The position numbers were made by a program, and so were the translations under genes. The notes beneath the pieces were generated by a model. It made no database searches, was not told where the DNA came from, and saw nothing but the letters and a program-made list of their open reading frames with translations. 33,108 bases of DNA from Corallochytrium limacisporum Hawaii (lineage: Eukaryota; Protista; Pluriformea), in assembly GCA_002811645.1 (NCBI GenBank), contig PDIP01000177.1, positions 1 through 33,108 on the forward strand. The letters are read 5' to 3'. Shown here in pieces: positions 3,271-30,906 of this stretch (the first letter of the stretch is position 1; each line of letters starts with the position of its first letter).

Positions 3271-4551
3271 CTACAAGGACTCCATAATCTGCCGCACATC
3301 CACGCACTGTTGCCGGAAGCCGAGACCTACGTTAAAGATTTCGACTTTGGTACCTCTGCCGCAGACCGCCAGGAGCTCCGTGGAGGAAGATCCGTCAGTT
3401 GTCTGCCGCTGCTGCTGCACCCGCTCCTCACCACTGTCTGTAGCCGCCGCGATACACTGTCGTGCCAGTCCGTACAGCGAGGCACTTGCGGTCCGAAGAC
3501 AGTGACTCTTACTACCATTAATTCGAAACCGACAGACAAGGCCCTTGGAGTCGGCAACCAAAATATCACCTGAAGTTTGGTCTCTGTCAGCATCAGAGCC
3601 ACTGCTGCGGATGAACTGTACGACCCTCGGCAGTCCCTCTGTCAAGAGCTGTGTGGCAATGGTTCCGCTTGTAATGTGCACAAGGGTCGCTGGGAATGAT
3701 CCACCGCAAACTAGCCATTCTCCATTCGGACTGATATCGAGACAGGAGGCAAATTGAGTGGCATGGGGCGGTCTGGTTGTTTGTGAACCATGCTCACTAG
3801 TCTGATCAAACGTAAAAACGCTAACCTGACTCAAAGTGCGATTGTTGAGGTCAAGATCCCAAAGCACCGCCTTGCTATCGTCGCCACAGGTCACGACCGG
3901 GACCAGAGGTCTCTCCGCAACCGCCTTCTTCTCTACAGAGTGCATACACTGGAGGCCATAAACGGGCCCATCATGGGCTGTGAATGATGCAACCACAGAT
4001 GGACCCTGCAGATCAACAAGGCAGAGCCGCCCAGTGCCCAGGGCAAGGAGTAGAGCGTTAGGTTCCGATGGCACAGCCGCTTTCGTTTCCACCTTCTCCG
4101 CACCTTTTTTGGCCTTTGACTTAGTTTTGGCAGGGCGGTTCGATGCCGCTGCAATTGGCCCTTCGGAGGGTACGGAAGAGATGGCAATGATCTCACTTGG
4201 TACTGGCAGTGGCGTGTCCATTGGTGCCCGTGTCCGGCTGAGAATTGTCCGCGCAGTGGAGTCAGTAAGAATCAGCTCATCCCCCACCCCCCAGGCAAGC
4301 CGATCCGCGCCAATCTTCACGACGCAAGAGACGGCAGCGCCAAATTTCTGTACTTGAGCCGGTGGTTCCTGCGGCAAGCATGGGACGCGGTAAACGAAAC
4401 CGAGGTCCGATCCCACAAATACGTTGTCGCCCACAAAGATGCAGCACAGCACGGACCCCTGGTCGAGTTTACGGCTCTCTGCCAATCCGTCTACATACTC
4501 ATTGAGATCAAAGATCAGACGCTCCGCCGGCGTGGACTGTAGTATGTCCAT
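3271..4551 (-). CDS. THOC6: WD40-repeat protein, THO complex subunit 6 homologue
   Basis: 426-aa ORF with an A-rich start context (AAAAAACA-ATG). WD motifs FTAHDGPVYGL and VVTCGDDSKAVLWDL. EWLVCGGSFPATLVHI and the C-terminal LAVCGRGTKVEIFNVGLGFR resemble the recalled THOC6 signatures (WxVCGGG...LWHL; L.A.G....VDVF.NLGY). An alternative upstream exon (donor GTAAGT at 4634) cannot be excluded. Confidence 0.78.
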   Translation of the reverse strand: MDILQSTPAERLIFDLNEYVDGLAESRKLDQGSVLCCIFVGDNVFVGSDLGFVYRVPCLPQEPPAQVQKFGAAVSCVVKIGADRLAWGVGDELILTDSTARTILSRTRAPMDTPLPVPSEIIAISSVPSEGPIAAASNRPAKTKSKAKKGAEKVETKAAVPSEPNALLLALGTGRLCLVDLQGPSVVASFTAHDGPVYGLQCMHSVEKKAVAERPLVPVVTCGDDSKAVLWDLDLNNRTLSQVSVFTFDQTSEHGSQTTRPPHATQFASCLDISPNGEWLVCGGSFPATLVHITSGTIATQLLTEGLPRVVQFIRSSGSDADRDQTSGDILVADSKGLVCRFRINGSKSHCLRTASASLYGLARQCIAAATDSGEERVQQQRQTTDGSSSTELLAVCGRGTKVEIFNVGLGFRQQCVDVRQIMESL

Positions 4552-11159: not shown

Positions 11160-11533
11160 AAAGCCGAGAGAGAGCGAGCGAGAGGGAGGGAGAGAGAGAG
11201 AGAGAGAAAAATCCTGCAAAAAAAATTGTTGGTGGCCCCAGTTTGGTGCAATATTCTGCGGCGGTGGCTGGCTGGAATGTCCTGGTGCAGGAAAATGGGG
11301 GAGGGGAGGGGGTAAGTTGTTGTGTTGGGGAAGGCGAAGGAAGGAAGGAAGGAAGGAACCAAGGAGGAGGAGGACGGGGGAGGGGGGGGAAGCGAAAGGA
11401 ACCAAAGAAAAAAAAACAGTGGCCAGAAACCCGCTAAGTTTTTTTATTGCTTTTTATCGCTCGGTGCCCCGTGCGCGGCCCTAAACGAGACCGAACCCAA
11501 GAAGAGAATCTAAAAAGAAATGATAGAAAGAAA

Positions 11534-11576
<43 letters not shown>

Positions 11577-12188
11577 CGGCCCTCGGCGGGCAAGGGAAAG
11601 TACGGACGGGAGAAGGGCCAAAGGCCAGAGATCGCGACGGAACCCAACCGTCTCACAAACGAGACCGAGAGGGTAAGTAAAGAGAGAGAGATATATATAT
11701 ATATATAGACATACACACACACACACACACACCGGGGGCCCGTCAGAAGAAGAAAAACAATGGGCGGGCCACGGAAAAAATAGCCACCCCAGCCTTCCCT
11801 TTCCCCGTTCCTTCCACGGCTCGTAACAATCCACGAGAAACTTTCGGTGCCCGATTGTTAAAAACACAAGGAAAAAGCGGGAAGAAAATGGCAGGTAAGG
11901 CAATCTGCGAACCTCTACCCAAAAAAAAAGAGAAAAGGAAAAAAAAAGCGAAAACAGCCCGGGGGACCGAAACGAATGAAAAGACACCGACCAAGGCAAA
12001 AGAGAAACACAGGCACCGGAGTGTAAGGAATAGTCCCCGTGCTCTTTCTTGCATTCTTTGGTTACCATTCCGAGAGAGAGAGAAAGAAAGAGAGAGAGAG
12101 AGAGAGCGAGAGACGAGAGAGAGAGAGAATACGCACACACCGATCGGACATAGACACAGAGAAGAACAGATGAGAACGGCGAGGCCGA

Positions 12189-12233
<45 letters not shown>

Positions 12234-12240
12234 GTGTGTG
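11160..12240. repeat. Purine-rich microsatellite field upstream of the Pil1-like gene: (GA)n, (AAGG)n, (AT)n, (CA)n
   Basis: (GA)n at ~11166-11206, 11536-11572, 12072-12128 and 12200-12230; (AAGG)n ~11337-11358; (AT)n ~11691-11707; (CA)n ~11713-11732. Confidence 0.9.
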
Positions 12241-12438
12241 TTAAGAGAGATCACCGACAAGAGAGAGAATTGGGAAAGTGTCGACTGTCAGCGTCCTTCG
12301 GTCTTTTGGTCCCGAAGAATGTACAGTGTACGAGCTGGTGGCTTTCCGGACTGGCACTGGGTGAAAGTTTGAAAGACGGGGCATGCACGGGCTGAAGATG
12401 AGGTACTTGATCTTAGGCATCAGCCGCACGGCTGCCAA

Positions 12439-12505
12439 GTACGTGATGCCATTTCCTACACACAAGAAAAGGGATTGTACCATAGCTCACCTTTCTTTAA
12501 TTCAG
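12439..12505 (+). other. Probable 5'-UTR intron of the Pil1-like gene (acceptor well supported, donor uncertain)
   Basis: GCTCAC branch-like element, CTTTCTTTAATT tract and CAG acceptor ending 12505, 26 nt before the ATG. The nearest good donor is GTACGT at 12439; GTAAGT donors also occur at 11312 and 11673. Confidence 0.45.
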
Positions 12506-12531
12506 TCACAAATACCCAAGTCTCTGGAACC

Positions 12532-13755
12532 ATGGCCGGACTCATCTCTGACGCCAAGAAGCTCACTAACAAGGCTAAGGCGAACACTGCCTTGAACGAC
12601 CTGCTCATCGATGAGAAGAATGTCGTCGAGGGTATCTTCACGGTGGCCACTCGCATGGACCATACTGCCACCAGTGCTCGCCACTTTGCCCTCCACGAGT
12701 TTGAGGAGGATCAGCAGGAGGATGTCCAGGACCTGTTGACCACCTTTTATGCCGTCGACGGTGTCATGGCAGCCGCCCTCACCGACTTTGCCAACGCCCG
12801 CGAGGCCAACCGCCAGGGGCTGAAGCATCTGCGGTCCAAGATTGCCCACCTTCAGGAGGTCACCAAGCGCCGTAACAAACTGGAGGAGAAGCTCCGCAAG
12901 CTGGAAGCCAATCAGAAGACCAGCGAAGCCGAGGAGGTCAAGCTCAACCTGGATGCCGCCGAGAAGGAGTACGAGACCTGCACCTCTTCCATTGACGAGG
13001 AGCGTCGTTCCATCATCAAGGAGCACTACGAAGACCTGGCGGAGGCATACCAGACTCTGGGTCAGCAGATTGCTGCTGTGTCTCACTACTTCCAAAAGAC
13101 CCTGGACATGATTCCTCCCAAGGCCAAGGAGGACATGACCACTGACTACTACAAGGGCCGCCCGGCCACCGCTCTCCTGGTCAAGAACGCCGCGGAAGCT
13201 CGCATGGGCGCCGAAACCCAGAAGCTGGACGGTACTTTTGATATCCCCGCTGACGTGAAGGAGGCCATGGACAAGGAGCCTACCCCGGAGGAGCGCCGCG
13301 AGGCACAGGAGAAGGCCCGCCAGGAGGCTGAGGCTGCCGCCCAGGCTGCTAAGGAGGCCCGTGCCCAGCAGCCCATGGCACAGCGCATCTCTGGCTCAAT
13401 CGAAAAGATTTTCGGTGGTGGTAAGGCCAAGAAGGCCGCCGGTGAGGAGGGTACGTCCCCAGAGGGTGAGGGTACCGCGACTACCCCCGGCGAGGAGAAG
13501 GCCTCTCCTGATACCGACAAGAAGAAGTCCGGCGGTGGCTTCCACATGCCCAAGTTCATGCAGAACCTGACCGGCAAGAAGGCTGCCCCTGCTGAGGGTG
13601 CGGCTGAGGGTGCTGCGACCACCACTGCCGCCAAGACTGAGGCTCCCGCCGAGCAGACCGAGGCAGCTGCCAAGGAGGTCAAGGAGGCCGCTGAGGAGGC
13701 CAAGGAGACTGTCAAGGCTGAGGCTGAAGGTAAGAACATTCCGGCCAGCGCCTAA
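12532..13755 (+). CDS. Pil1/Lsp1-like eisosome core BAR-domain protein with an Ala/Glu/Lys-rich C-terminal tail, 407 aa
   Basis: ATG at 12532 in ACCATGG context. Colinear similarity to yeast Pil1/Lsp1 as recalled: LNDLLIDEKNVV ~ LSQLVKIEKNVL; EDVQDL ~ DDVSDI; NRQGLKHLR ~ YRLTLKSIR; RRNKLEEKLRKL ~ RKDKITDKIAYL; NLDAAEKE ~ ELVRAEAE; QQIAAVSHYFQKTLDMI ~ EKIALIAGYGKALLELL; YKGRPATALLVKNA ~ YDGYEASKQIIIDA. Very strong codon bias suggests high expression. Confidence 0.8.
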   Translation: MAGLISDAKKLTNKAKANTALNDLLIDEKNVVEGIFTVATRMDHTATSARHFALHEFEEDQQEDVQDLLTTFYAVDGVMAAALTDFANAREANRQGLKHLRSKIAHLQEVTKRRNKLEEKLRKLEANQKTSEAEEVKLNLDAAEKEYETCTSSIDEERRSIIKEHYEDLAEAYQTLGQQIAAVSHYFQKTLDMIPPKAKEDMTTDYYKGRPATALLVKNAAEARMGAETQKLDGTFDIPADVKEAMDKEPTPEERREAQEKARQEAEAAAQAAKEARAQQPMAQRISGSIEKIFGGGKAKKAAGEEGTSPEGEGTATTPGEEKASPDTDKKKSGGGFHMPKFMQNLTGKKAAPAEGAAEGAATTTAAKTEAPAEQTEAAAKEVKEAAEEAKETVKAEAEGKNIPASA

Positions 13756-14993
13756 GGAACAAATTGACAAAAACAGCGAAACCTTTTGGGGGACCATGAC
13801 ACATGTACTCAAAACACCAGCAGCAACACCGGATCTTGTGTTTAAGAGCAACAGCACGCAAGGTTGCCCAGGGACGCATGTCTGAGAAGGCAAGAAAGGA
13901 GGAGGGTTCTCCATGCAATCCCAACCTACTCGTGAGCAAGGGTAACCTCACTGCTTGACGAGAACGGCATGTTGAGCTGGATATGGAGTAGAGACAAAAA
14001 GAACATGGCCAATCGCGGCCTGTGGCCGAGGAATCTCGAGCTCATTTCTTTCCGTCTCTTTTCCCATGTCTGCTGCTCCTGACGCTCTCTCTCACACATT
14101 CATTCCGTGGACAAACCGTTGCATGCCCTTTTGGCGTGCCTTTTGTGTGGCCATGCGTACCGGTACGCGCACCTCGTTTAACCTTTCTTTCTTTCCCTTC
14201 TGGTGGTACCTTTTTGTAGTCGTCGGTGTGACCGTGCTCAGGTCACCCCACGCAACAGGGTACTCGACTCTAACTGTGCCAAAGACCAAAAAAAAAAACA
14301 AACATGGAGCAAGGAAACATGCAAAATGCGCAGGGTGGGATCTGATTTGTGGAAGGGGTGGGTTTTTGGCATGACATGAACACGCCACAAGACGCCGGGT
14401 CTCCTTTTCTTGGGGAGGTTCGGGTCAATCATCTGTTTGCTCTTTCTCCGTTTCTTCTTCCCCCGCACTGTTGTGGAGTTTAGGGGCCCGCCTGCAAGTC
14501 CTTGACGGACATTCAGACGCAAACCCTTCTTGTCCTCAACTACCCAACGAGTCATGGAAAACTTGAACAAAGAATCGAATCCAAAAGAAAAAGTTTTCTT
14601 AAATACCATTGTAACAGTAACCCAACATACCCCAAACGCTCGATCCAACCCTAGATTTGCTGTTTGTTTTTAATCGTGTCTCTTAAGGCTACTTATCACT
14701 TAACTGGTGGTGCGCTGCTGCTGGATCCCATTTCTGCTGTGTGTCAAGTTACCCCAATGCGCACAATTGGCAAGAACATGATTCCCAAAGGACAAAGGAG
14801 CTGACAATACTAACCTTCGTGACCCTTTCCCATTCTCTTTGACCAAGGTACAGGCAACTGAGTGAACGGTACCCTTCCATTGTCATCAACCTCCAATGTA
14901 GTAGACATCACAAAACTGCGCGAGCATTAGAAATACACTTTGGTCATTTACAAAAAGAAGCTTTGGCTGTACTTTATTGGTGTGACTTACAGG

Positions 14994-17900
14994 TCAACGC
15001 AACTGTTCCGTGTCCAAAACTAGGTCCACGACCTCCGTTTCGCGGTTGATCACGTCGGTTCCCGCCATGCGTTTGACAGGGGGCGCTCCGGGCGGTGACG
15101 GGCGCGGACTGAGCGTTCCTGCGTTGGCCGGTGGCTCGGTCGACGACGGTTGCGAACCGGGACTGTTCAATGTCAGAGATTGATGCATACCCGTCGGGGA
15201 CTGACGAGTGGTCGCTGCTGTCCCTGCCGCTGCCGCTGCGGCCAAGGCAACGGACTGTCCACCGCCACCGATCGCCAGTGTCATACCCGAGTGCCGTCGC
15301 TTGCCGGCCGAGCTCGTGGTCCCGCTGCCAGTTGCCGCCTGCGCCAAGGCCACTGCCGCGACGGGAGGCAATGAATGTGCGAGCATGAGAATACCCCAGA
15401 GCACGCTCCATACGTAGCCAAAGATCACGAAAGCGAGCACAAACTGACACTGCGCAGTCCACAGCGCCACGGCGAGCTGCAGGCAGCGCTGGGGGAAGGT
15501 CTTGTGGCTCCGTTTGGCCATAGGGTGCCGCTGGGGTTGTTGATATCGTTGTTGTGTCTGTGACTGTTGTGACTGCGGCGCACGGTATCGTACCTTCGGC
15601 AGTGCAGGGTCGGTGATGAACGCCGCAGAGGCGCCGACCACCGAGCCTGGCTTGTCGCTGTTGAAATCGCTGCTGCTGCCGTCACCACCCACTGGGCCCA
15701 CTGTACCCATACGAGGGCCACTGTCGGCACCCGCTCCTGCGCATCCGACGCTGCGGAACGTCCGACCACCAGACGACGGTGGGTCCTCAGCAGTGGACCC
15801 AGTCCACGGAACTTGCGGCTGAGACGGCGGCGGCGGCGGCGCTGCCACTGGCGTCGCTCCAGCGTTCACGTCAACCCCTATGAAAAGCAGCGCCGATCGC
15901 AACGCGAGTCCAAGTTGCGCAGCGACCGCGGCAATGGCACCAGTGCCTGCGGGCACCGCTGAACGCGGGAATTTCGCGCTTGGACCGCCACTGCCGCTAC
16001 CATAGTCACTGCCACCGCTGTAGTACCCAGTGCCCGGTGTCATGCCGTTTGACGGTGACGAAGACGGGCGCCGTGAATCATAGATTTCGCCTTCGTGACC
16101 TGCACAGAGCAGGACCGCTGCCAGTGCCGTGCCGCTGCCGCTGAGCAAACAGTTCAGAAACATCGCCGTGATGGCTGTCTCCCGCGTAAGGGGCGAGGGC
16201 AGTGACATGGCTATGATGCGCGACAGTCCCTTTACAAAGTCACCACCGGGGAGTCCTTTCATGGGCAAGGAGCGCGGTAGGACTCCGCGGATGTATGTAG
16301 GCTGTCCGAACGTTGGCGTCGATGTCCCAGAGGCGCGCACCGATCCGTCTCTGTGGCGGCGTGATGGTGTCGCGCTGCTGTGCCGGCTGCTGCGATGCCG
16401 GGGGCCGCCATAACCTCCGCTATAAGCACCATAGGCCCATTTCGAGGCCACGGCAGATGGCCCAACCATGGCTCCGGCCCCGGAAAGGACCGAATGATCT
16501 TGTACCCAAGCTCTGCCAAAGCCCAGGAACCGCGACAGGGAGATGCCCGCACCTCCCTGGCCGCCACTGTTGTCCCGGGGTATACGACTGGTACTACCAC
16601 TACGCCGGCCGCGTTGGTGATAATGACTACCACGTGGTCCGGTACCATCGTAGAAACTCAGACCCTGTGCCATGCGCGTTGTTATCACGTCCGGCAGAAG
16701 TGCATTAGCCGATGCAGTTACAAAGCCTGCGAGCCCGCTACCAATGCCTCCAGCAGGCCCACCGCTACCGTCGCTACCGGCATTATCACCGTACAACGGA
16801 CCACTGCCGACCGCGGCAAGGAAGGGCGGACCATTTCGCCGACGGTGTCCATGCCTGCGGCGCCTGCGGCGCCGTCTGCGGTGGGCCGGTCTTTGGAAGC
16901 GACCCGAAGGTTCCAAACTGCGGCTCCGGCGGCGCGAGAATCCCTGCACACGACTCCCGCCCGCTAACCCACCACTGACAGTATCGTCCGCACCGCTGCG
17001 CTTGCGAATGTCTGCAGCATGGACAGTGATGTCGCCTTCGACATCGGGTTCGTCGCCTTTTTGGTCGTCGTCGGCATCCGAAGTGCTCCCACCACCACCA
17101 CCACCAGGCGGTGGGATATGGAAGTCATCTACAGACTTTTGTAAAGCTGGTGCCCCTGTCGCTCCGTAGACCGTGCGCTCCGATGAGCATGGAGCAGCAG
17201 ATACAGGCGCCGAACCACACGGACCGTTGGCCTTCGACACTGCAGCGCGGTCACAGTCATCGGCCAGCGATCCCGAGCCGTGAATCTCCTCTTCTGCGTG
17301 CCCACTTCCCGAACCCACACGCTTGAGAATGCTCCGGCGATTGTTGCTTTGGTTGTCGTTGTCCTCGTCGTACGAGTCGTACTCATCCTCGTAGGTATAA
17401 TCATCGTCATCGTAGCCATCCTCATCGTCGTATGTTTCTTCCTCGTCGTAGGAATACTCTGACCCGTCCGAGTCACTCCCGTTGTGGTTTTGGTAATCCT
17501 CGTCCGAATAGAACCCATAGCCAAAGTCCTGTTGCGGATTATACATGCCGCTCAGTCCTGAATGATTGTCTGGCCCACTATCATTGACGTAGTAATAGTG
17601 TGGATAGAAATGAATGTGCGTGTGAGGCTGCAAGTCCATCAATCGATTAGCACTGGAGCTGCGTGAGATACCGGAACGCGGAGTGTACGCACCGGATGGG
17701 GTGCGCATACCCTTCGGTGTGCGCAACCCAGATGCCAATTGATCGTAGATAGCGGATCCGTAGATCGGCTGAGGACGCACGTATGAAGAAGAATGGTAGT
17801 ACCCCAACGCATCGTCAGCGTCAAAGTCTTGTGACGTAGCGATGGGGTCCGGGCGGTATGGGTCAAACCCCTCTGTAGCTGCCGCGTGTGTTTCTCTCCA

Positions 17901-18227
17901 GTCGTTGCTGTGATTCCCGCCGTCGTCTCCATCTCCACTGCTGAATATCCGATCTGGATCAGGCGCTGTAGGAGGCGGTGCGTCGGTAGACTCTGCGGGC
18001 ACTTGACTAGTTGCACTGCTGCTCGGACCTGCCAGAGCAGCGCTGCTGTCATTGGTTTCTGTGATGTTACTGCGCTGGGCTAATGATCTCCGTCGCTGTT
18101 GCTGTTGTAACCCTTCCAACGAAGACTGCAGCTCGTCGGCGCTGAGTCCGCCCGTTGGAGACCGGGCCATGGTGGCCGACGAATGCGTTGGGTTGTCCTC
18201 ATCGACCATCTTATCTGGCGGATGCAT
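14994..18227 (-). CDS. Large low-complexity protein with a C-terminal Stum/SPEC3-family membrane domain split by an insertion, ~1077 aa
   Basis: Uninterrupted ORF, first in-frame ATG at 18227. LPSPLTRETAITAMFLNCLLSGSGTALAAVLLCAG (16202-16098) matches the first Stum/SPEC3 half (P..A..C..LN...PG.GT......LC). LAVALWTAQCQFVLAFVIFGYVWSVLWGILML (within 15488-15381) matches the second half (A..Q.......VGW..SI.WG...). AATAAA lies ~16 nt after the stop. Confidence 0.78.
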   Translation of the reverse strand: MHPPDKMVDEDNPTHSSATMARSPTGGLSADELQSSLEGLQQQQRRRSLAQRSNITETNDSSAALAGPSSSATSQVPAESTDAPPPTAPDPDRIFSSGDGDDGGNHSNDWRETHAAATEGFDPYRPDPIATSQDFDADDALGYYHSSSYVRPQPIYGSAIYDQLASGLRTPKGMRTPSGAYTPRSGISRSSSANRLMDLQPHTHIHFYPHYYYVNDSGPDNHSGLSGMYNPQQDFGYGFYSDEDYQNHNGSDSDGSEYSYDEEETYDDEDGYDDDDYTYEDEYDSYDEDNDNQSNNRRSILKRVGSGSGHAEEEIHGSGSLADDCDRAAVSKANGPCGSAPVSAAPCSSERTVYGATGAPALQKSVDDFHIPPPGGGGGGSTSDADDDQKGDEPDVEGDITVHAADIRKRSGADDTVSGGLAGGSRVQGFSRRRSRSLEPSGRFQRPAHRRRRRRRRRHGHRRRNGPPFLAAVGSGPLYGDNAGSDGSGGPAGGIGSGLAGFVTASANALLPDVITTRMAQGLSFYDGTGPRGSHYHQRGRRSGSTSRIPRDNSGGQGGAGISLSRFLGFGRAWVQDHSVLSGAGAMVGPSAVASKWAYGAYSGGYGGPRHRSSRHSSATPSRRHRDGSVRASGTSTPTFGQPTYIRGVLPRSLPMKGLPGGDFVKGLSRIIAMSLPSPLTRETAITAMFLNCLLSGSGTALAAVLLCAGHEGEIYDSRRPSSSPSNGMTPGTGYYSGGSDYGSGSGGPSAKFPRSAVPAGTGAIAAVAAQLGLALRSALLFIGVDVNAGATPVAAPPPPPSQPQVPWTGSTAEDPPSSGGRTFRSVGCAGAGADSGPRMGTVGPVGGDGSSSDFNSDKPGSVVGASAAFITDPALPKVRYRAPQSQQSQTQQRYQQPQRHPMAKRSHKTFPQRCLQLAVALWTAQCQFVLAFVIFGYVWSVLWGILMLAHSLPPVAAVALAQAATGSGTTSSAGKRRHSGMTLAIGGGGQSVALAAAAAAGTAATTRQSPTGMHQSLTLNSPGSQPSSTEPPANAGTLSPRPSPPGAPPVKRMAGTDVINRETEVVDLVLDTEQLR

Positions 18228-18793
18228 CGTTCCCGAGCTCTGCAAATATGGTGTTCATTCAAATGCTCACATGAGCAAATATGTTACCCCATGTTCCAGG
18301 CTCTTCCCGACAAGGCTTTGCCAGTTGACCATGAACTGTGCTCTACTACTTGAGCGACGGAGTGATTCACTTGGTTCCTTGAGTCCATCCAATGATAGCA
18401 GTACTTGGTTCTTTGCACTAAAGTTCACGGACAGCTTTTGGACAGGAATTCAAGTCACAGGAAACCTCCTTCAGGAACGGGAGGTCTTGAAATAACAGGG
18501 AGATTCCTGGAACCTTTGGACAAGAGATTCGCACCTCAAACACCAGCAGCACTGGTGCTTAGTGTGATATCACTGCTGTAATCAAGACAAATTCCACAAA
18601 ACTATAAACTCGAGTTTACCGAATACACCATATGCGAACAAATACGGACCAGAAAACTAAACAGCCGGCCAAAAATTATCGACACGGATCCCTTGTTATG
18701 CGTCGGAAATTTTACCCTTTTTCTCGTTTTGCTCTCCGTTCCCGAGGGCCGCCTCTCCAACCTTGGGCCCACTGACACACCCCAACCGCCCTT

Positions 18794-21114: not shown

Positions 21115-24100
21115 ATGGGGCAGCCGGGCGATACTCCTCTTTACGTGCTTCTTGTAGGATTTCACCACACTCAGGGACCAATCGCTGAGTACTGCTACCC
21201 CAACCCGTACCCTCAGGGATTTGAGGCTGAATACGAGAAAAGTAGCGACAATGGCATTGCTCTGCCGAAATTGTGGAAACACATGCCATTCCTGTGCTTG
21301 CCGGATGGGTCACATCGAACCATGAAGGACCACACATACTTTATCTTGCCTCCTCTGCCGGTGTCGGGACCCAATACAGAGTATGATCCGGAGGATGCCC
21401 AGACATTCCAAGACGCACAGGGGCATGCTATTTTTGGTGTGGCAGCCTTTGCACAGGTAAAATCGGATCTTCTGAAGGCCAAGGATGATCAGGTAACCCG
21501 AACGTTTGTGCAGAAATCGGTGGTCGTGCTGAGTCCGAAACAAGGGTTTCCCAAAGTCCGGGAACGATTGCGTCTGGTCACGGACGCCCTCTTTGCGCAG
21601 AAAGACTTTTCCATGCTCGATCTTCTACATCAGTGTCACGCATCCATGACTCGAAGTGGCATTACGAACTTGTCACGGGCGTCAATTGTGAAGCTTACCT
21701 CGCTGGCTCGTGGTGAGCAGGGCGCAGGGAGCCAGCTAGAGGACATTGCAGAGGACGATGACGACTCGGAGCTGGAAGAGCTTGGAGGGGAGAGTCAGAG
21801 AATACCTTCATCCCGATCACGGACGGTGACTAGCGATGCCAGCCTCGAGCGCCTACCATCAGGTCTCACAATGCGCGTCCTGCGCCGTATGCGCGCGAGC
21901 CAGGGATCCGTGGTTACTCTCGATGTCAGGGATATTGAGGACAGCGAAGCGTCAGTACAGAGCGGTCTCCTCTTCTTGCGATACCACCACAAGGCCCTAG
22001 CTGTGCTGAAGGCTGTGCTGCTGGGTGCCAGCGTCGTGGTCTTTAGTAGGAACGGTGGAGCTGCCTGCTCCAACGACGTCGTTGAGCTGATGAGCTTAAT
22101 CCCCCTGGAACTGGCCAGCCTGTCACTACAGCTGTGCCCGCAGGCCCGAGCTAAGCAGGCCATTCTCAAAAACCGGAGGGAAAGGCATGGCGGGACAGAA
22201 AGCTTTAGGATGGCGACAGTGATGCAGGAGGACAGCGTGGAGCGCCAGCGGGACACAGCCATGCCCCTACAGCTGGTGCATCACAGCGGTCTCTTGTTTC
22301 AACCGTACGTATGCATTCAGGAGATGGACGATATCAAGGCGGCCAGCACATATATTGTGGGCACATCGAATCAGATGATAACTGAACTGGCCGAGCCAGA
22401 TGTGTTGATGCTGTGCGAAAAGAAGGATGAGTTTGCATCCAGAAACTCGGGCCCTTTGGTGAAGAAAATCCAGCAGCAGGAGGACAACGGAAGATCTTCG
22501 CTGGGCGCCTCACCGGACCAGAGTTCAACATCCAGCATTGATGATCTTCTTAATGAAGGCCGTGTGGAGTTCCGCTCAAAGAAAATGAGAGAGCTGTGCA
22601 TCCTGACCACTTCGGACTTCCGTTTTGCGGATTATATTGTGCGTGCCGTGCAGGAGCACCGGGCCGGCGAGATTCGAGAGGCTCAAGAGGCCCAGGAGGC
22701 TGTCAAGCAGAGGCAGCGAGACCTGGACCGTGAACGCTGCCCCACAACTGCAGAGAACCGTTCGGTTACAGACACGGGCGGCGCCGATTTGAAGCGGCAG
22801 TCTGGATCGGCCACTGGTAATGTGCCACGGGCCCCGACGCGACTGAAGGACTTGAGCACCGAGACACGATACAAGGGTAGCGACGAGTGGGTTCGCCATC
22901 AGTGTCATGAATACATCCTCCGCTTGCTGTCTTGTATGCGAAGGGCTGGATATCTGGACTGTGAAATTAGCGAGCACGGTGTCTTTGCGAAGGACCACGA
23001 AGGCTTCCGCATTTGGGCCTCGCGACAATCTTCGGAGGTAGAGGACGAAGATGCTGACCCGTCCGCACTGGATATGCAGGGCCCTTCGCTAGATAAGCGT
23101 GCGACATCCAAGACGTTGCCCGCGTCGACCGATGAGACAAGCGATCGCAGCCGTAGCAGTGTCGGATCAGCCTACGGTATGGGAAGCGATCCTGCAATCC
23201 TGTCTTTTCGACGGCGTGATCATGGCAAGGTCCGGTCCTACGGCAGTCAGTGGACGAACGAGTTTGCGAAGACCCCTGTGTACAAGCGCTGGTGTAGTGT
23301 TGTGGCCGCGCGGGAAGCCCTGGAATTTGCGGCCGCCGACGGACACAGTCCGACGCGCAGCGATTCCGGGCACTCGTTGTCGCAATCGCAAGGCCCTGGT
23401 GGTTGCTTGCGGGTGCCGAGGGTTGTGGCAAAACACCCCGGTGACGAGCCAGAAATGGGCCAAGGCGGTTTCTTCGGTGACGTTGCGCAGCGGCTCAAGG
23501 CCGGTGACCTGCACTTTACACCCGTTTTCCGCGATGATCTGGCGCACTCTGCTAAGGCTACAGCCGTGAGCATTACAAAGGGCGTTGAGGGGCTATTCGG
23601 TAGAGTCCTGGGTGCGGCCAAGACTGTGACGGAACCGATACAGCACCGCAACACTCCGAGATCTGGAACAGCCTACGGCCAGGGTGGCAGCAGCAGCACA
23701 GAAGATAGTCTGGCCGTCCCCGAGGTCGGCGAGGCGACCCGCACACGCAAAGGCAGTGAGCACAGCACGACCAGCATTAGTAGCTCTAGTAATATCAAGC
23801 AATCGTTGCAGCAAGGGTGGTCTGGTCTCAGGTCGATGCTGCCGGGTGCAAGCTCAGCAGGCGACACCAGCAAGAAATCCGACAGTGTGTCACATTCGTC
23901 GTCACGATCCAGCGTAGGGACCGGAACCGATGGACAAATGTCAAGACCACTATCGCACTCTGAACGGCCCAAGAACCGGCCTCCTCCGGTGCCCATGGTT
24001 GCACCTGATGACGGTACATACATGGAGAGCCCTGCGGACAGTCCCTTAGATCTGCTGAAAGAGGACATTGACGTCCAGGGCCTTACCCATGGCAACGGTG

Positions 24101-24165
24101 AAGGATCCGCAAAGGGCAACAACTCAGAACGGCCGCATCGTCCAGCCCCGCCGCCGCCACCATAG
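21115..24165 (+). CDS. AVL9: Late secretory pathway protein AVL9 (DENN-related), 1016 aa
   Basis: Hallmarks: LLVGFHHTQGPIAEYCYP, WKHMPFLCLPDGSH, IFGVAAFAQV, VTRTFVQKSVVVLS, RLRLVTDALFAQKDFS, FQPYVCIQEMD, YIVGTSN, LTTSDFRFAD, YKGSDEWVRHQCHEYILRLL. Confidence 0.95.
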   Translation: MGQPGDTPLYVLLVGFHHTQGPIAEYCYPNPYPQGFEAEYEKSSDNGIALPKLWKHMPFLCLPDGSHRTMKDHTYFILPPLPVSGPNTEYDPEDAQTFQDAQGHAIFGVAAFAQVKSDLLKAKDDQVTRTFVQKSVVVLSPKQGFPKVRERLRLVTDALFAQKDFSMLDLLHQCHASMTRSGITNLSRASIVKLTSLARGEQGAGSQLEDIAEDDDDSELEELGGESQRIPSSRSRTVTSDASLERLPSGLTMRVLRRMRASQGSVVTLDVRDIEDSEASVQSGLLFLRYHHKALAVLKAVLLGASVVVFSRNGGAACSNDVVELMSLIPLELASLSLQLCPQARAKQAILKNRRERHGGTESFRMATVMQEDSVERQRDTAMPLQLVHHSGLLFQPYVCIQEMDDIKAASTYIVGTSNQMITELAEPDVLMLCEKKDEFASRNSGPLVKKIQQQEDNGRSSLGASPDQSSTSSIDDLLNEGRVEFRSKKMRELCILTTSDFRFADYIVRAVQEHRAGEIREAQEAQEAVKQRQRDLDRERCPTTAENRSVTDTGGADLKRQSGSATGNVPRAPTRLKDLSTETRYKGSDEWVRHQCHEYILRLLSCMRRAGYLDCEISEHGVFAKDHEGFRIWASRQSSEVEDEDADPSALDMQGPSLDKRATSKTLPASTDETSDRSRSSVGSAYGMGSDPAILSFRRRDHGKVRSYGSQWTNEFAKTPVYKRWCSVVAAREALEFAAADGHSPTRSDSGHSLSQSQGPGGCLRVPRVVAKHPGDEPEMGQGGFFGDVAQRLKAGDLHFTPVFRDDLAHSAKATAVSITKGVEGLFGRVLGAAKTVTEPIQHRNTPRSGTAYGQGGSSSTEDSLAVPEVGEATRTRKGSEHSTTSISSSSNIKQSLQQGWSGLRSMLPGASSAGDTSKKSDSVSHSSSRSSVGTGTDGQMSRPLSHSERPKNRPPPVPMVAPDDGTYMESPADSPLDLLKEDIDVQGLTHGNGEGSAKGNNSERPHRPAPPPPP

Positions 24166-24278: not shown

Positions 24279-27200
24279 CTATAGCAGATCCTGCAGCTTA
24301 ATGTTTCGTCGCACAGCGTTTGTGACACCCTCATTGTACTTGTACCACAGCGGATGAGTCGCCAGGAAGTGTTCTTTGCCTGTCTTGCGGCGCTTCTCGC
24401 CGCCGGCATCTGACTCGATGATGCGACCGAAAAAGTCCCTGCGCACGACCGTGATCGAGTCTGCAGAAACTTTCTTCTTCTTGGCCTGAGCCAAAGAGAT
24501 GCCCTGTGATGCCCGGCTGTGGCCACTGGACTGGGACATGAGCTGGCTCAGCGATGTGACCGTGGCACGACCGTTGCGTGGGGTCTCCAGAACATTGGTA
24601 CTCGCATCCGTTTCCATGCCTGCATCTACGTCCTGTTCCTCCCCCTGGTGCTGATCACCATCAGCCCTTTTCTTCATCATGTTCACCAGAGCACCACCCC
24701 TTTGCTTGTGCCTACGCTCGAGCTCCTGTTGAAGTTCCTTGCGGCGGGCTTCCTTCCTTTGGATTCGCAGTTCGTGGCACTTAGAGGCCAGGATGGTTTT
24801 GGAAATTCCTGACCGAGGCTTCCGGTCACGCACCAAGGCCAATTTGGCCGCAGCAGCAGCATCCGGGTCCTCACCGCGAAGCAGTGCCTGTCGTCGAGCT
24901 TCGCGCTCTTTCCACGTCAGGCGTTGTGTAGCATCTAACCCGTGGACTGCGCGCATGGCATCCGCCGGATTGTCGGCGTAGCTGAGCATGCGGTCGATCT
25001 CAGGCACGAGCACCCATTCGTATTCGTCACCATTTGCGGTTGTGGCACTGGACGTGTTCTTGGAAGAGTCTTTGATGCCGTTATGGTTGGAAACTTTACG
25101 TTGCACCATGCTTATCCCATGGTCGAGCATTACATTGGCTGCCTGTTGAATCATCTTCCGCTCGTACCGGGGCATCATCTGCGCACTAATGCCCCGAATG
25201 GCCGGAGTGATGATGTCGTAAATGTCAGACAGGCTTTGCGTGACCGCATTGCCCATAGCGTGTCGACCGAATGAGCCCCACAGACTTCGAAGGGATTGCA
25301 CATCACCGGGGTCGACAGCGTCCGCTGGGTTGTCCTCATGCGGAGCAAGGGACACTTTGCCACTGCTCTGCACGGACTGCAGGTTAGAGTCCCGTGCATT
25401 ACGCTTGCTGATCTGTTCCTTCGGATGCAGACCCATCATAACATCACGCAGCATCTGTCGGCGTTGATGAAATTGAAAGCCTTCGTTTGGGAATTTCAGG
25501 CGCGGTACATGTTTTGCACTGCATTGCACGTGATACGCGGCAAGAGCATATGGAACGTATCGATCCATGCCTTGCACACCATCTGTATACTTCTTGTTCA
25601 TGAGAATATCACACCACGTGTTCCACTCGCCGATTTCGGGTAGATACTTCAAATTGGCATTTACGACAGGCATGGCCAAATAGTTCTCAAAGCAGCCATC
25701 CCGCAGACGCTCGTAGTCACCATTCGCATAAATAGCCTCAAGTGTACTGGCCAAATTAATGCCCACAGAGGATGTCTTGCTCTTTCTTCCGCTCTTGGCC
25801 CGATGTGTCGCGTCGAGTGGCCGTGGGACATCATCCGTATCCTGCATTCGTCGCTTCCCCTTACAGGCAGCATTGTTTCTGTCTGGTTGCCTCTTGAAAA
25901 TATGGTCCCACACTTTGAACTGATGTTCAGAGGAGTCCTTGGAAGGCAATGACGCCAAATCCTTCTGGCTTAGCAGGGTCTTACGTTGCCGGAAGAATTG
26001 AAGGGTGTGTAAACAGCTGCGCATGTCATGGTCCAGGCGACGCATAAGTGCAGTCATCGTCTTGCGGTCAACACTCAGACCTTCGAGCTGACAGATGTCG
26101 TTCAGACGATGGTACAAGGCGACTTCATTAACCTTAGCAATGTTCAGCACCAATGCTTGCTCTCTTAGTTGCTTCAAGTGCGGCACGTAGAGATTGTTGC
26201 AGATGCAAATGATAGGCCGCAACAATCCCATTCCTGCAAATTTGGCCTTTTTGCTTTTCTCTTTTTCCTTGTCCTCTAGACGCCATTTTGAGGATGAGGA
26301 GCCCTTGCTGTCACCACGGTCCCGACGGGAGTTAACATTGGTCCAGATACGATCTTTGTCCAACAAGCGAGTAAGGTAGCCAATGGCAGCCCGGTCAGCA
26401 CCATCGATTTCGTCAATGATGAGGCAATTTGGCCTGGGGTTCTGACTACTACCCTTCACGTGGCGCATCTGAACCGCCGAGTACACCTTTTCTGAAAAGA
26501 CAGAGTACTGCCGATCATCACTGGCATTCATTTCCACAGGTTCATAGCCGCAGTGTCGAGCCACGATGTGTGCCACTGTGGTCTTTCCCAGACCAGGAGG
26601 ACCAGCAATCATGATGATGCGGTGTTGAGGGCGGCGCATGGAATCGTTCCGCTCCATAATCGGCTTCTCGCGCTCCAGCTTGGCCTTTAGACTATTCCGG
26701 TTCTGTCCTTTGTCGTGTTGAGAAAACAATGTAGAGGAGTCTGAATTCACGTTGGACCGCTTCTGTCCGGTCAGCCCTTTGTTAAGAAGCACTTTCTTGG
26801 GACCCACACCTGCGGCATGTTGCAGAGCACGTCGCTCTGCCGCGGCCTCGACGTTGGCCCGCATACGCTCCAGGGCAATCGTACCCTCATTGGGTATAAA
26901 AGTCACCTCCCCCTTCTGCACCTTTGTGCCATCACTGATCATTGTTTGTGCATGAATGCCCGTGAGCTCACCAAAGCAGCAATAGTTCCACGCCTTGAGC
27001 CAGCCCAGAAGGCGCAAGTTGAGACTGTCATCACTAATCAACTGTGCAAAAGTTTTTGGAGAGTACTTGTCAACCCAAAGTTTGTGTTCCCGTAATCCGC
27101 TTTCCGGGTCCACGAAATCTACTGCCTGTCGCTCTGCCATACTTACACTGGCAAGCAATTGCTCCTGACGTCTGCGCTCATCGTTCTCTGCTCGTAGATC

Positions 27201-27722
27201 GTCAATGCTCTTGTCCAGAAGCAGCCCATTGCGGCTCAAAGAGCGAAGATAGGAGCTCTGGTCCTCAAGCGACGCTGTGATAGCTACACCACGGCGCACC
27301 TGCTTACGGGATAGATGATTTCGGTAGGTCACAAAACGGCGGGTGAAGTTAAATTCTGCAAAAACCTCGATGCTATCCTGGTTCGTGGGTCGAAACTGAT
27401 AGACTCTGCCGCTACTTGTGGGTGGGTCAATGTCGCTCTCATCTTCGTCAGTGTCTACACCCGCCACATTGACCTGATTTGGGGCGGAAGGTGGAGGATT
27501 TTTGGCATTTTCTGCGTCGAGAAGAGCTTCAAATTCTTCATCATCGATATCGTCCGCCACCGACGGAATGTCTTCCAAGTCACTGAAATTGTCTGGCATC
27601 TCCATTTGATTGCAGTCTGCATTTTCCTTGCCTGTTGAAGAACTTTCCATTCCCGTCTTCACCATTTCCTGAGCATTGAGGAACGCCTCGGCCTCTGCGG
27701 CCATCCGCTCGTACTCATCCAT
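24279..27722 (-). CDS. CTF18: Chromosome transmission fidelity protein 18 (alternative RFC large subunit, AAA+), ~1147 aa
   Basis: LWVDKYSPKTFAQLISD, Walker A GPPGLGKTT, EMNASDDR, Walker B RPNCLIIDEIDG, RPIICICNNLY, DMRSCLHTLQF, RDFFGR and the diagnostic C-terminus WYKYNEGVTNAVRRNIKLQDLL. Start placed at MDEYE (27722, ACCATGG context); ATG 27800 is an alternative. Confidence 0.97.
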   Translation of the reverse strand: MDEYERMAAEAEAFLNAQEMVKTGMESSSTGKENADCNQMEMPDNFSDLEDIPSVADDIDDEEFEALLDAENAKNPPPSAPNQVNVAGVDTDEDESDIDPPTSSGRVYQFRPTNQDSIEVFAEFNFTRRFVTYRNHLSRKQVRRGVAITASLEDQSSYLRSLSRNGLLLDKSIDDLRAENDERRRQEQLLASVSMAERQAVDFVDPESGLREHKLWVDKYSPKTFAQLISDDSLNLRLLGWLKAWNYCCFGELTGIHAQTMISDGTKVQKGEVTFIPNEGTIALERMRANVEAAAERRALQHAAGVGPKKVLLNKGLTGQKRSNVNSDSSTLFSQHDKGQNRNSLKAKLEREKPIMERNDSMRRPQHRIIMIAGPPGLGKTTVAHIVARHCGYEPVEMNASDDRQYSVFSEKVYSAVQMRHVKGSSQNPRPNCLIIDEIDGADRAAIGYLTRLLDKDRIWTNVNSRRDRGDSKGSSSSKWRLEDKEKEKSKKAKFAGMGLLRPIICICNNLYVPHLKQLREQALVLNIAKVNEVALYHRLNDICQLEGLSVDRKTMTALMRRLDHDMRSCLHTLQFFRQRKTLLSQKDLASLPSKDSSEHQFKVWDHIFKRQPDRNNAACKGKRRMQDTDDVPRPLDATHRAKSGRKSKTSSVGINLASTLEAIYANGDYERLRDGCFENYLAMPVVNANLKYLPEIGEWNTWCDILMNKKYTDGVQGMDRYVPYALAAYHVQCSAKHVPRLKFPNEGFQFHQRRQMLRDVMMGLHPKEQISKRNARDSNLQSVQSSGKVSLAPHEDNPADAVDPGDVQSLRSLWGSFGRHAMGNAVTQSLSDIYDIITPAIRGISAQMMPRYERKMIQQAANVMLDHGISMVQRKVSNHNGIKDSSKNTSSATTANGDEYEWVLVPEIDRMLSYADNPADAMRAVHGLDATQRLTWKEREARRQALLRGEDPDAAAAAKLALVRDRKPRSGISKTILASKCHELRIQRKEARRKELQQELERRHKQRGGALVNMMKKRADGDQHQGEEQDVDAGMETDASTNVLETPRNGRATVTSLSQLMSQSSGHSRASQGISLAQAKKKKVSADSITVVRRDFFGRIIESDAGGEKRRKTGKEHFLATHPLWYKYNEGVTNAVRRNIKLQDLL

Positions 27723-28182
27723 GGTTACGTAAACGCGTAAAGGGTTTCCTAGATCATGATCAGTTCTTGCCCAGGAGAGCCCTTCACCGATGTGAATCAT
27801 TTTCGTCAACTCCTGTGATAAACTGTATCAAATACATAGTCAAGTACCAGTCCATGCAAAAACGCAAATGAAAATGTAGGCAAGCGAGCTAAGTTGCAGA
27901 AACTCCGTCCCACCAATCGTCGTGGTGCTGCCAAGCGGTGAGACTCAGGGAATACCCAGCGTCCTTCTCCCTGTGCGCTCCTCTGTGTCAGGGATTCCAA
28001 CTTTTTCGCGCCCAAAGTGGGCCCCTTCCCCTTCCCGTCCTGCACCCGCAGAACCGACCTTCACTTGTTCACAAGAAGGGTGGTACTGGTACCACCGTCA
28101 AAGGGAAGAGAGCTGGGAGTCTGTTTCTTTCCGCCGAGGGCCCGGAGAAAAAAGTCCCCCCCGCCCCCCCCGGGGGGGGGGG

Positions 28183-28449: not shown

Positions 28450-29457
28450 CTAGAGGCGGCTAGCATTAAGGTAAGGGGTGGTCCGCTTGACGGTTTTCCA
28501 GACCTTGTGGCTTTGTTCCAAATGTTCCTCAAGTTTCTCGTTAACAATCCGTTCGTGCTCTCCGATGACTCCGTGACCACCGTCTGCAATGATGAGGAGC
28601 TCACCTCCAAGATGCTCATGCAGCCAGGTTGAGTTCGCGGGACGAATGAGACTATCAGAGTCACCGCACATGACCAGAATAGGCACTTCACTCTTCCTGA
28701 CCATAGCAGCGCGTGAGGAGGTGAACCAGTGGCGTGATCCAGCCATCATATGGCTGATACGTCCTGCGGGAGAGGCAGCTCCCAAGTAGTACACCCGTGC
28801 CTGGTCCTTCATGAGCATGGTCACGAACTCCGTGTTCGCCCGCGTGACATCTGAATACAGAAACTGTGCTGCAAGCGTGGCCCTCTGCTTAGGATCGGTA
28901 GACATGACGGCCCGGAAGAAGTCCCAAAGCATAGAGACACCAGGCCAGTAGGACGGGGTCATCATACCTGCAGTGGTGTTCAGTAGGCTCACACTGATGG
29001 CCTTCTCCGTGTGCCAGTAAGCAAATTCCTGAGCAATCATGCCGCCCATACTGATACCAACGATGTGTGCTTGATCCCATCCAAGGTGCTCCATGAGCTT
29101 GGACAGGTCATCTGCCATCTGCTTGGTGGTATTAAAGATCGAAGGCACTGAGGACTCACCACAACCACGGTTATCGTAAGCCAGGATATCGTAGTCACCC
29201 TTATTCATAAAGTAATAGATCTGTCTCTTCCACGCCTCGCAGCGCATGCCCAGACCCATGATCAGTACCAGTTTCTTCTCAGCAGAAGCGTTACCATACA
29301 AATGGTACTTGACCCTCACATCTCCATAGAAACCCTTGTCCACAGGTGCGAAGTCACGCACGCGCGGGACAGGAAAGTGCTCAGAGCCGAATCCCGGGAA
29401 GCGGGTACCTACCGGGTAATCATGCACTATGTGTGTGTGAGGATCAGAAGCTACCAT
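28450..29457 (-). CDS. Alpha/beta-fold hydrolase (Abhydrolase_1 type) with C-terminal PTS1 -SRL, ~335 aa
   Basis: Oxyanion region LIMGLG, YDNRGCGES, nucleophile elbow GISMGG, acid in CGDSDSLI, His in GGHGV. ATG at 29457 in ACCATGG context; the ORF-track start is a GTG. Confidence 0.92.
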   Translation of the reverse strand: MVASDPHTHIVHDYPVGTRFPGFGSEHFPVPRVRDFAPVDKGFYGDVRVKYHLYGNASAEKKLVLIMGLGMRCEAWKRQIYYFMNKGDYDILAYDNRGCGESSVPSIFNTTKQMADDLSKLMEHLGWDQAHIVGISMGGMIAQEFAYWHTEKAISVSLLNTTAGMMTPSYWPGVSMLWDFFRAVMSTDPKQRATLAAQFLYSDVTRANTEFVTMLMKDQARVYYLGAASPAGRISHMMAGSRHWFTSSRAAMVRKSEVPILVMCGDSDSLIRPANSTWLHEHLGGELLIIADGGHGVIGEHERIVNEKLEEHLEQSHKVWKTVKRTTPYLNASRL

Positions 29458-30906
29458 GGTTATGAGTTGTGCCTTACTCGTATGTATTGAGATGTAATGC
29501 ACGCTGTGTATCGCTCATAACATCTCGCTACCATGTCCTGATATTCTTCGTTTCAATACCTTGTCCTTCCTCTGCGGACAACATCCCGCCCCCCTTCACC
29601 AGCGACCGGTCGAAGGATCTGTTGCCTGCAGCGGACACGGGCGGCGTGTTTGGGGTGTGTACGTGTCGGTTGGTTTCAAGGACCGGTGCTTTCCTATGCT
29701 CGTACAATAGCACTCCATCTGCGCAATGGTGACGGGTGGAACACCTGCGAGTGCGTAGTGTTTTCTATTTTTGTGGCTCTCCGTTCAAACGACGTGAACC
29801 CGTCCAAGGAGGAACGGACTCAAGGAAACGCACGGAGTGAAACGCGTGCGAGAACCGAGCGAACACAGGAAGCTGAACGGGGCAAATAAAATCTTCCCTT
29901 CTGATATTCATGCAACACACACATCCACTCGACACGGACCAGGGAAAGTTCTGTGGCGGCTGCTGACCCCTAACGTCGACCCCACCGACTCGCCAGAGAT
30001 TGTTCCTGTCCTTCCCAATCACTCTCTGACCCAAGAATTGAGTGACACAGCAGCGGCCGTGGACCACAGAAAGAAAGGTTTTCTTCTTTTCTGCCAAATT
30101 TCACCAGCAAGCCGTCTCACTTCCCCACCACCCAACCGGGCCACCCAATAGTTGGACAACCACCGCGGATGATTGTGTACGGTTGGTTAGGATCTATTTG
30201 GAGTTTTGGGTATGTGCAGATGTGTTCTATGCCTGCCATTGGGTGATATGCCGGTACACTATGTACTGGGAGTATGTGGTGGAAATGTGAGTTCCAGGAA
30301 GGGAACTAAGTATGCTGTTGATCCTTGCTCAATCAAAGGCACAGACAAGGGGGGGTTTCGAGCTGGGAACGTTAAAAACTTTATAGTAAAAGTACTAGAA
30401 AAGTTCCCAGCCAGAAACACCTTGGGAAAGCCGTGGACGCTGGCTCTCGATGGTTCGTTGCCGTCCGCCTTACGTTTTCGAAGTCCCTTCGGTTGCGGTT
30501 CCATAGTGAACATATGGATCAGGCAAAGGTCAGGTGACAACAGGGAGACTTCCTGCCTTTCGCTGGCGGGCGGGAAGGGGTTTGTGCACTTTCCTCGCTG
30601 TAAGTGCTCCCAGCATACGGACGTCTGCGGTTGTCCCGCAGAGAGTTCGGGGTGCCAGTGCGGTCGTTTCATGCCGGCGCCGATTCGGTTTCTGACTTCT
30701 GAGGATGCCCTTTTGATCCTTTTAGGATGGCGGTGAGGGCACAGAGGAACAGTGGATCAAGGCACTTGCCACATGGTAGCAGCGTTCATGCTAAAGGATA
30801 CGTGTTGCAACGTTGGTATCGTCTGTACTAATACATATGTACCGAGGTAACTTTGCCTAGGTTGATGGCCATGGTGATTCTTGTACTAAGAAAGAAATTA
30901 AGTTTT

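Follow-up and report, generated by a model that had tools for sequence, protein, structure and literature searches.

The window analyzed here, a stretch of 33,108 nucleotides covering positions 1 to 33,108 of contig PDIP01000177.1 (assembly GCA_002811645.1, forward strand) of Corallochytrium limacisporum Hawaii, contains an intronless gene on the + strand (12532-13755, including the stop codon at 13753-13755) that encodes a 407-amino acid (aa) protein similar to Pil1 and Lsp1, the core proteins of yeast eisosomes. The first-pass annotation had noted a Pil1-like interval at 12532-13206; this interval is real and corresponds to residues 1-225, that is, the 5' part of one uninterrupted open reading frame (ORF), and the colinear match to Pil1 was confirmed. 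An in-frame stop codon is located upstream, at 12370-12372, with no in-frame ATG between this stop and 12532, and the start ATG at 12532 is preceded by A at -3 and followed by G at +4. The identical 407-aa protein is present in EukProt. The host had been suspected to be a non-fungal unicellular opisthokont, and it is one: C. limacisporum belongs to the Holozoa (Teretosporea) (PMC5560861) and is listed as Opisthokonta incertae sedis in the NCBI taxonomy. A second Pil1-type protein of this organism is represented by EukProt entry Clim_evm9s199.

The gene is transcribed. A transcript-like contig of 1825 nt from a small run of 2015 maps to 12474-14298 on the + strand and comprises a 5' leader of ~58 nt, the coding sequence (CDS) and a 3' region of ~540 nt, with 0 differences, 0 gaps and no joints compared to the genome. 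The RNA nature of this run is a guess made by software although the contig ends at the gene borders, and its colinearity fits an unspliced mRNA and the 407-aa gene model. Over 991 coding bases, a contig from a second strain shows a single difference, the synonymous GAG to GAA at 13263, compared to 9 substitutions and 1 indel over 845 bases downstream of the CDS. Furthermore, in marine metatranscriptomes from 2025, three contigs of 210-415 nt fall on the CDS (12792-13062, 13272-13686 and 13309-13518), each carrying 1-2 differences such as S102T, S153A and R263H, and, therefore, transcription takes place in the sea in Corallochytrium or one of its very close relatives. At the 3' side, several short transcript contigs start or stop around 14288-14298 (within 14269-14317), and one short contig carries 15 A's before 14288 on the + strand, which is possibly an assembly junction joining the 3' ends of two convergent genes. 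The upstream intergenic DNA (11481-12260) is full of (GA)n/(CT)n-type dinucleotide runs, which give rise to long spurious ORFs in several frames; the transcript comparison passed over these stretches as repeats.

The assignment of the encoded protein to the Pil1 family comes from profile comparison. A two-member profile was built from the paralogue Clim_evm9s199 and the protein TPX42842 of the chytrid Synchytrium endobioticum, both of which are Pfam-Pil1 positive, whereas the window protein was left out. This profile matched the window protein with 69.6 bits (67-70) in a single colinear domain, residues 8-225 (12553-13206, + strand). Of 4000 shuffled sequences (2000 global and 2000 local), the best reached 14.8 bits, and reversal of the sequence gave 5.1 bits. 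Other BAR genes from the same genome were hardly recognized, with 3.7 and 2.1 bits for two genes matching PF03114 and ~0 for a FAM92 gene. When 1.84 billion representatives were searched exhaustively by phmmer with the window protein as the query, a single non-self match emerged, TPX42842 (E 3e-4), which itself passes Pfam Pil1 with 65 bits, and in the Corallochytrium genome, the only other match was the Pfam-positive Pil1 paralogue (E 4.8e-7). The PDB was searched only with a three-sequence profile that included the window protein; it retrieved Lsp1 (80 bits, 1.4e-21) and Pil1 (64 bits, 1e-16), the window protein's own contribution to these scores not being isolated, and the next match was at E 0.03.

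In pairwise comparison, similar distances, of roughly 50 bits for each pair, separate the window protein, its paralogue and the chytrid protein. These equal distances indicate that the two Corallochytrium copies originate from an old split rather than from a recent duplication. The two copies share 27% identity over 160 residues (E 6e-11), both show 20-27% identity to the chytrid member (24-27% for the window protein), and identity of the window protein to yeast Lsp1/Pil1 in structural alignments is 16-19%, so that the unusual divergence remarked on in the first-pass annotation is evident. Word-index protein searches with the window protein, the paralogue or the chytrid protein each returned the query alone, and the metagenome scans detected no relatives. 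The weak Pfam matches of the window protein (ISG65-75, TetR_C_28 and others) were all below the cut-offs and were taken as chance. Judging from these comparisons, the window protein is genuinely, if distantly, homologous to the Pil1 family, although not a member by the Pfam cut-off.

The AlphaFold2 model of the protein consists of three long helices (residues 2-56, 59-126 and 130-192), a short turn and a C-terminal helix (211-231), that is, a three-helix BAR-type domain. It is followed by a disordered tail rich in Ala, Glu, Lys and Gly (residues 236-407; 13237-13752, + strand), with a net charge of -7 and a predicted local distance difference test (pLDDT) score <50 over most of its length, in which two short helices are predicted. 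In Foldseek searches with the single-sequence model, all six PDB chains of Lsp1/Pil1 came out on top (E 2e-3 to 7e-3), and the same six chains led with the domain model (pLDDT 74; E 4.7e-5 to 4.1e-4), followed by SNX1, APPL, endophilin and FAM92A from 4e-3, with FAM92A at rank 18 (E 1.8e-2). All good structural matches are BAR domains. Other BAR proteins, namely, FAM92/CIBAR (PF06730), N-BAR (PF03114), arfaptin, SNX-BAR and the algal "Red-BAR" (3CAZ), adopt the same crescent-forming three-helix fold and reach VIA Z-scores of 10.5-13 but have no sequence-profile relationship with the window protein, and, in Foldseek, their E-values are weaker by factors of 10 to 400. In VIA, the alignments with Pil1 and Lsp1 stand out by their length, 203-204 residues with the last helix included, and by higher identity (16-17%). 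The ESM Atlas fold search returned only unrelated helical bundles. In terms of language-model features, the nearest ESM-Atlas cluster for both Corallochytrium Pil1-type proteins (0.90 and 0.92), ranked above the fungal Pil1 clusters, consists of unnamed arthropod proteins of ~300 aa without Pfam domains; this could be either chance or an unrecognized animal relative.

The two-copy prediction for residues 1-235 scored 0.82 (0.82, 0.82 and 0.76 in the individual runs), compared to 0.42 for the best control; the mark applied to this score is reached by 21 of the 30 solved homodimers and by none of the 23 solved monomers. Contact agreement among the runs was at least 79%, and the partner pLDDT was at least 79. 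The predicted interface is symmetric and involves residues 13-58 of helix 1 and 155-198 of helix 3; residues 34, 38, 177 and 180 contact their own counterparts. As predicted, it has the geometry of an antiparallel BAR dimer, which is a likeness and not binding. The preference of the first-pass annotation for Pil1/Lsp1 over other BAR families is upheld by the profile scores (69.6 bits against <4) and by the top six Foldseek matches. Neither of the two outcomes that the first-pass annotation had named as contradicting it was encountered, namely, another BAR or coiled-coil family as the best profile or structural match, or CTF18/AVL9 trees with the host inside fungi.

The protein is colinear with residues ~45-260 of yeast Pil1 and retains the equivalents of K66, R126, K130, R133, R145 and K148. 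The alignments equate R94-x3-K98-x2-R101 (12811-12834, + strand) with Pil1 R126/K130/R133, which bind the headgroup of phosphatidylinositol 4,5-bisphosphate, PI(4,5)P2 (PMC11324527). K29 (12616-12618, + strand) occupies an invariant column and corresponds to K66 of Pil1/Lsp1 in the Lsp1 alignment; in Pil1, K66 is a phosphatidylserine contact, with R70 as its partner (PMC11324527). R113 and K116 (12868-12879, + strand), again by the Lsp1 alignment, match Pil1 R145/K148, a positive patch on the concave face that was targeted by charge-reversal mutagenesis and was concluded to matter for the association with membranes and the nucleation of eisosomes (PMC3128537). Beyond helix 3, a segment with the pattern D-x-I-P ... 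Y-x-G ... helix (13105-13206, + strand) is common to Pil1 family members; its invariant columns are D192/I194/P195, G209 and P211, and the Y-K-G of the window protein aligns with Y-D-G in Lsp1.

The N-terminus of the window protein (residues 1-20; 12532-12591, + strand) is lysine-rich and weakly amphipathic, with a hydrophobic moment of 0.54 for residues 4-14 and no aromatic residue. L21 aligns with L58 of Lsp1/Pil1, and VIA equates residue 11 of the model with Pil1 residue 49; accordingly, the shortened N-terminus described in the first-pass annotation is genuine, with ~37 residues absent. An N-terminal extension is ruled against by the closed upstream frame and by the transcript contig, which has no extra exon. 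In Pil1, the N-terminal fold (1-38) provides lattice contacts and is continued by the amphipathic helix 39-48; this part of Pil1 carries F33/Y40/F42/F50, which bind sterol (PMC11324527). Overall, the window protein resembles S. cerevisiae Pil1/Lsp1 (PF13805; PDB 3PLT, 8QB7-8QB9) in having a three-helix BAR domain, a C-terminal segment that folds back and a tail that is disordered, together with a symmetric antiparallel homodimer, predicted in this case, and the codon usage of a very abundant protein. It differs from the yeast proteins in the tail, which is a different, Ala/Glu/Lys-rich sequence, in the lack of the N-terminal lattice contacts and of most of the amphipathic helix, and in its occurrence in a holozoan rather than in a fungus.

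The paralogue Clim_evm9s199 (410 aa; G000:C231, L001:1456-2688, + strand; 100% identical to the EukProt entry) has an equally short N-terminus and the conserved R-K-K/R triad. Unlike the window protein, it is recognized by Pfam Pil1 (54 bits), with a direct match to Lsp1 at 3e-10, and its BAR domain is followed by a linker rich in proline and, at the C-terminus, by a UHM/RRM-like domain similar to those of RBM39, Man1 and Tat-SF1. To our knowledge, no BAR-UHM fusion has been described. The chytrid protein TPX42842 (415 aa) shares with the window protein the combination of a BAR domain and a disordered tail but is fungal and Pfam Pil1 positive, and retains R70.

The codon usage of the window gene is extreme, as the first-pass annotation had pointed out. 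The effective number of codons (Nc) is 36.1, compared to 50.9-57.4 in six neighboring genes, A occupies 4% of the third positions, compared to 13-18% in the neighbors, and the AAG:AAA ratio is 41:1. An aldolase-like gene from another part of the genome is less biased (Nc 43). Such codon usage is typical of a very abundant protein, and we infer from it that the product of the window gene is abundant as well; yeast Pil1 and Lsp1 are very abundant proteins. Because the paralogue shows no codon bias (Nc 55), the window gene is expected to encode the abundant Pil1-type copy.

Elsewhere in the genome, a SUR7-family gene encodes a four-transmembrane protein of 200 aa (G000:C181:227930-228442, L004:1441-2043, - strand). 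The PF06687 (SUR7/PalI) profile, for which the cut-off is 29.6 bits, scores this protein at 35.9 bits, with positions 5-198 of the 201 in the profile aligned. The gene shows a moderate codon bias (Nc 43). By its domain assignment, this protein would be a second component of the eisosome or the MCC (Can1 membrane compartment) type in a non-fungal genome. The PF03114 and PF06730 profiles identify only other loci in the Corallochytrium genome and do not match the window protein. The sole FAM92/CIBAR match (G000:C48:4556-4900, - strand, L005) covers profile positions 111-225 and contains one TAA, probably, as a result of an intron or a split gene model.

The other genes of the window include an ORF of 1083 aa with a Spec3/Stum domain (39.5 bits; 14994-18245, - strand), which is convergent with the Pil1-like gene. 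The remaining neighbors encode a WD40 protein, taken for THOC6 in the first-pass annotation (3271-4551, - strand), Avl9 (215 bits; 21115-24165, + strand), an RFC/Rad17-like AAA+ protein, the CTF18 of that annotation (24279-27809, - strand), and two tandem alpha/beta hydrolases (28450-29502 and 30907-32043, both - strand).

As a whole, these observations are probably best explained by a divergent Pil1/Lsp1 BAR protein that represents a separate paralogue line and functions as an eisosome-like membrane scaffold in a holozoan. Under this interpretation, two chains would pair in the antiparallel orientation to form a crescent, and its concave, locally basic face (K29, R94, K98, R101, R113 and K116) would bind the plasma membrane at its inner leaflet, which is rich in PI(4,5)P2. 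Such dimers, in large numbers, could then coat and stabilize curved, furrow-like invaginations below the cell wall, as eisosomal Pil1/Lsp1 do, probably, with the participation of the SUR7-family tetraspan protein. The long tail, acidic and rich in alanine, would be expected to extend into the cytoplasm. Given that the 37 N-terminal residues are lacking, the lattice and the lipid selectivity are expected to differ from those in yeast.

Several findings weigh against this interpretation. The window protein is not recognized by the curated Pfam Pil1 model (PF13805): the family is not listed even at E<=1, so that the gathering threshold of 27 bits is not reached, and a single-protein phmmer search against the PDB sequences returned only noise. 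Pil1 R70 is replaced by E33, and R43 is not retained either; the protein begins at about Pil1 residue 38, without the region that includes F33/Y40/F42/F50, and the net charge of the BAR domain is -8. The geometry-only Z-scores of VIA do not single out Lsp1/Pil1 (12.0-12.8), with 13.2 for arfaptin, 12.6 for Vps5, and endophilin and APPL tied; therefore, shape alone says BAR, and no more. The root-mean-square deviation from Lsp1/Pil1 is high, at 6.6-7.4 A, and the input alignment of the domain model held two Pil1 members. The outcome of the dimer prediction may reflect model memory because BAR dimers have already been solved. Finally, the genome search for Eisosome1 (PF12757) came up blank, as did its controls, so that this search is uninformative.

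With regard to the origin of the gene, we tentatively suggest, as a possibility somewhat short of an even chance, that the last common ancestor of animals and fungi already possessed an eisosome module of Pil1 and Sur7, which the walled and osmotrophic Corallochytrium retained and which disappeared on the way to animals. The abundant, N-terminally truncated Pil1 would then scaffold tension-responsive furrows, with a lattice built in a way unlike that in yeast. Alternatively, the Pil1-type genes, and SUR7 along with them, might have been acquired from a fungus by horizontal transfer, in which case they would be uninformative with respect to the opisthokont ancestor. Such an acquisition would fit the literature searched, which reports the Pil1 family from fungi only, and the lifestyle of Corallochytrium, a walled marine saprotroph that has habitats in common with fungi. 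We nevertheless consider transfer unlikely, although by no means far-fetched, given that both copies are very far from all fungal sequences compared (20-27% identity to the chytrid protein and 16-19% to the yeast proteins), that one of them falls below Pfam detection and that the use of codons has fully adjusted to that of the host. A recent transfer is further disfavored because the two Corallochytrium copies are as distant from each other as they are from the chytrid protein.

Function poses a separate question, namely, whether a protein of the Pil1 family in this organism would necessarily line static furrows. It might instead shape another membrane, such as the cellularization or ingressing membrane in cleavage-type divisions, or an endocytic or intracellular membrane. 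There is precedent for this in the Pil1 relatives Meu14 and Ssp1, which act in this way at the forespore membrane in yeasts, and members of the Pil1 family with specialized roles arose repeatedly (PMC12470953). The loss of the N-terminal lattice-contact region of eisosomal Pil1 would be compatible with such a role, as would the ~50-bit distances, because Corallochytrium copies that split long ago may differ in function. However, an Nc of 36 is more in keeping with an abundant structural protein that is made constitutively than with one restricted to a certain stage, and the PI(4,5)P2 pocket typical of plasma-membrane Pil1 is retained in a genome that also encodes a SUR7-family partner; this alternative, therefore, seems quite doubtful to us, and the eisosome-like scaffold is retained as the preferred interpretation. 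It is highly improbable that the protein is instead a generic BAR or coiled-coil protein (FAM92/CIBAR, arfaptin-like or SNX-BAR) with a Pil1 likeness caused by helical composition: although the missing Pfam Pil1 match, the tied VIA Z-scores and the language-model features, which score FAM92 and BAR clusters similarly to Pil1 clusters, would be consistent with this possibility, neither the shuffled and reversed sequences nor the genuine BAR and FAM92 genes of the same genome come anywhere near the 69.6 bits of the window protein, the only matches in the 1.8e9-protein library and in its own genome belong to the Pil1 family, and the family-specific residues and the post-helix-3 motif are conserved. 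A generic coiled-coil identity was rejected on the strength of the shuffle and paralogue controls.

The known distribution of the family has been widening. In the 2011 survey by Olivera-Couto et al., Pil1/Lsp1 were found in Dikarya only and were apparently absent from Chytridiomycota, and eisosomes were suggested to be confined to fungi (PMC3128537); a survey from 2023 reported the Pil1 and SUR7 domains in Mucoromycota but not in Zoopagomycota (PMC10079182). The chytrid protein TPX42842, which passes Pfam Pil1, stands in contrast to the apparent absence from Chytridiomycota in the earlier survey. Reviews describe similar furrows in walled fungi and in microalgae. Algae reportedly lack the fungal eisosome genes, as Lee et al. 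are said to have found in 2015. In the literature searched, nothing joins Pil1 with Corallochytrium, or eisosomes with Holozoa or non-fungal opisthokonts. The Pil1-family protein analyzed here comes from a unicellular relative of animals, whereas the literature searched describes the family from fungi alone, so that the family may predate fungi.

Among the models of how a protein lattice, together with specific lipids, generates a stretch-sensing membrane microdomain, eisosomes have a leading place, and their core proteins have been regarded as a fungal invention. The presence of a Pil1-type gene, a canonical paralogue and SUR7 in an animal relative would point to an origin of this module before the split between animals and fungi, or else to an old transfer. 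That Pil1-based eisosomes are older than fungi is plausible but unproven. The finding in Corallochytrium also agrees with the reported link between furrows and the cell wall. Furthermore, a natural "minimal" Pil1, devoid of the N-terminal lattice and sterol element, offers a test of which parts of the protein are needed for lattice assembly and lipid sorting.

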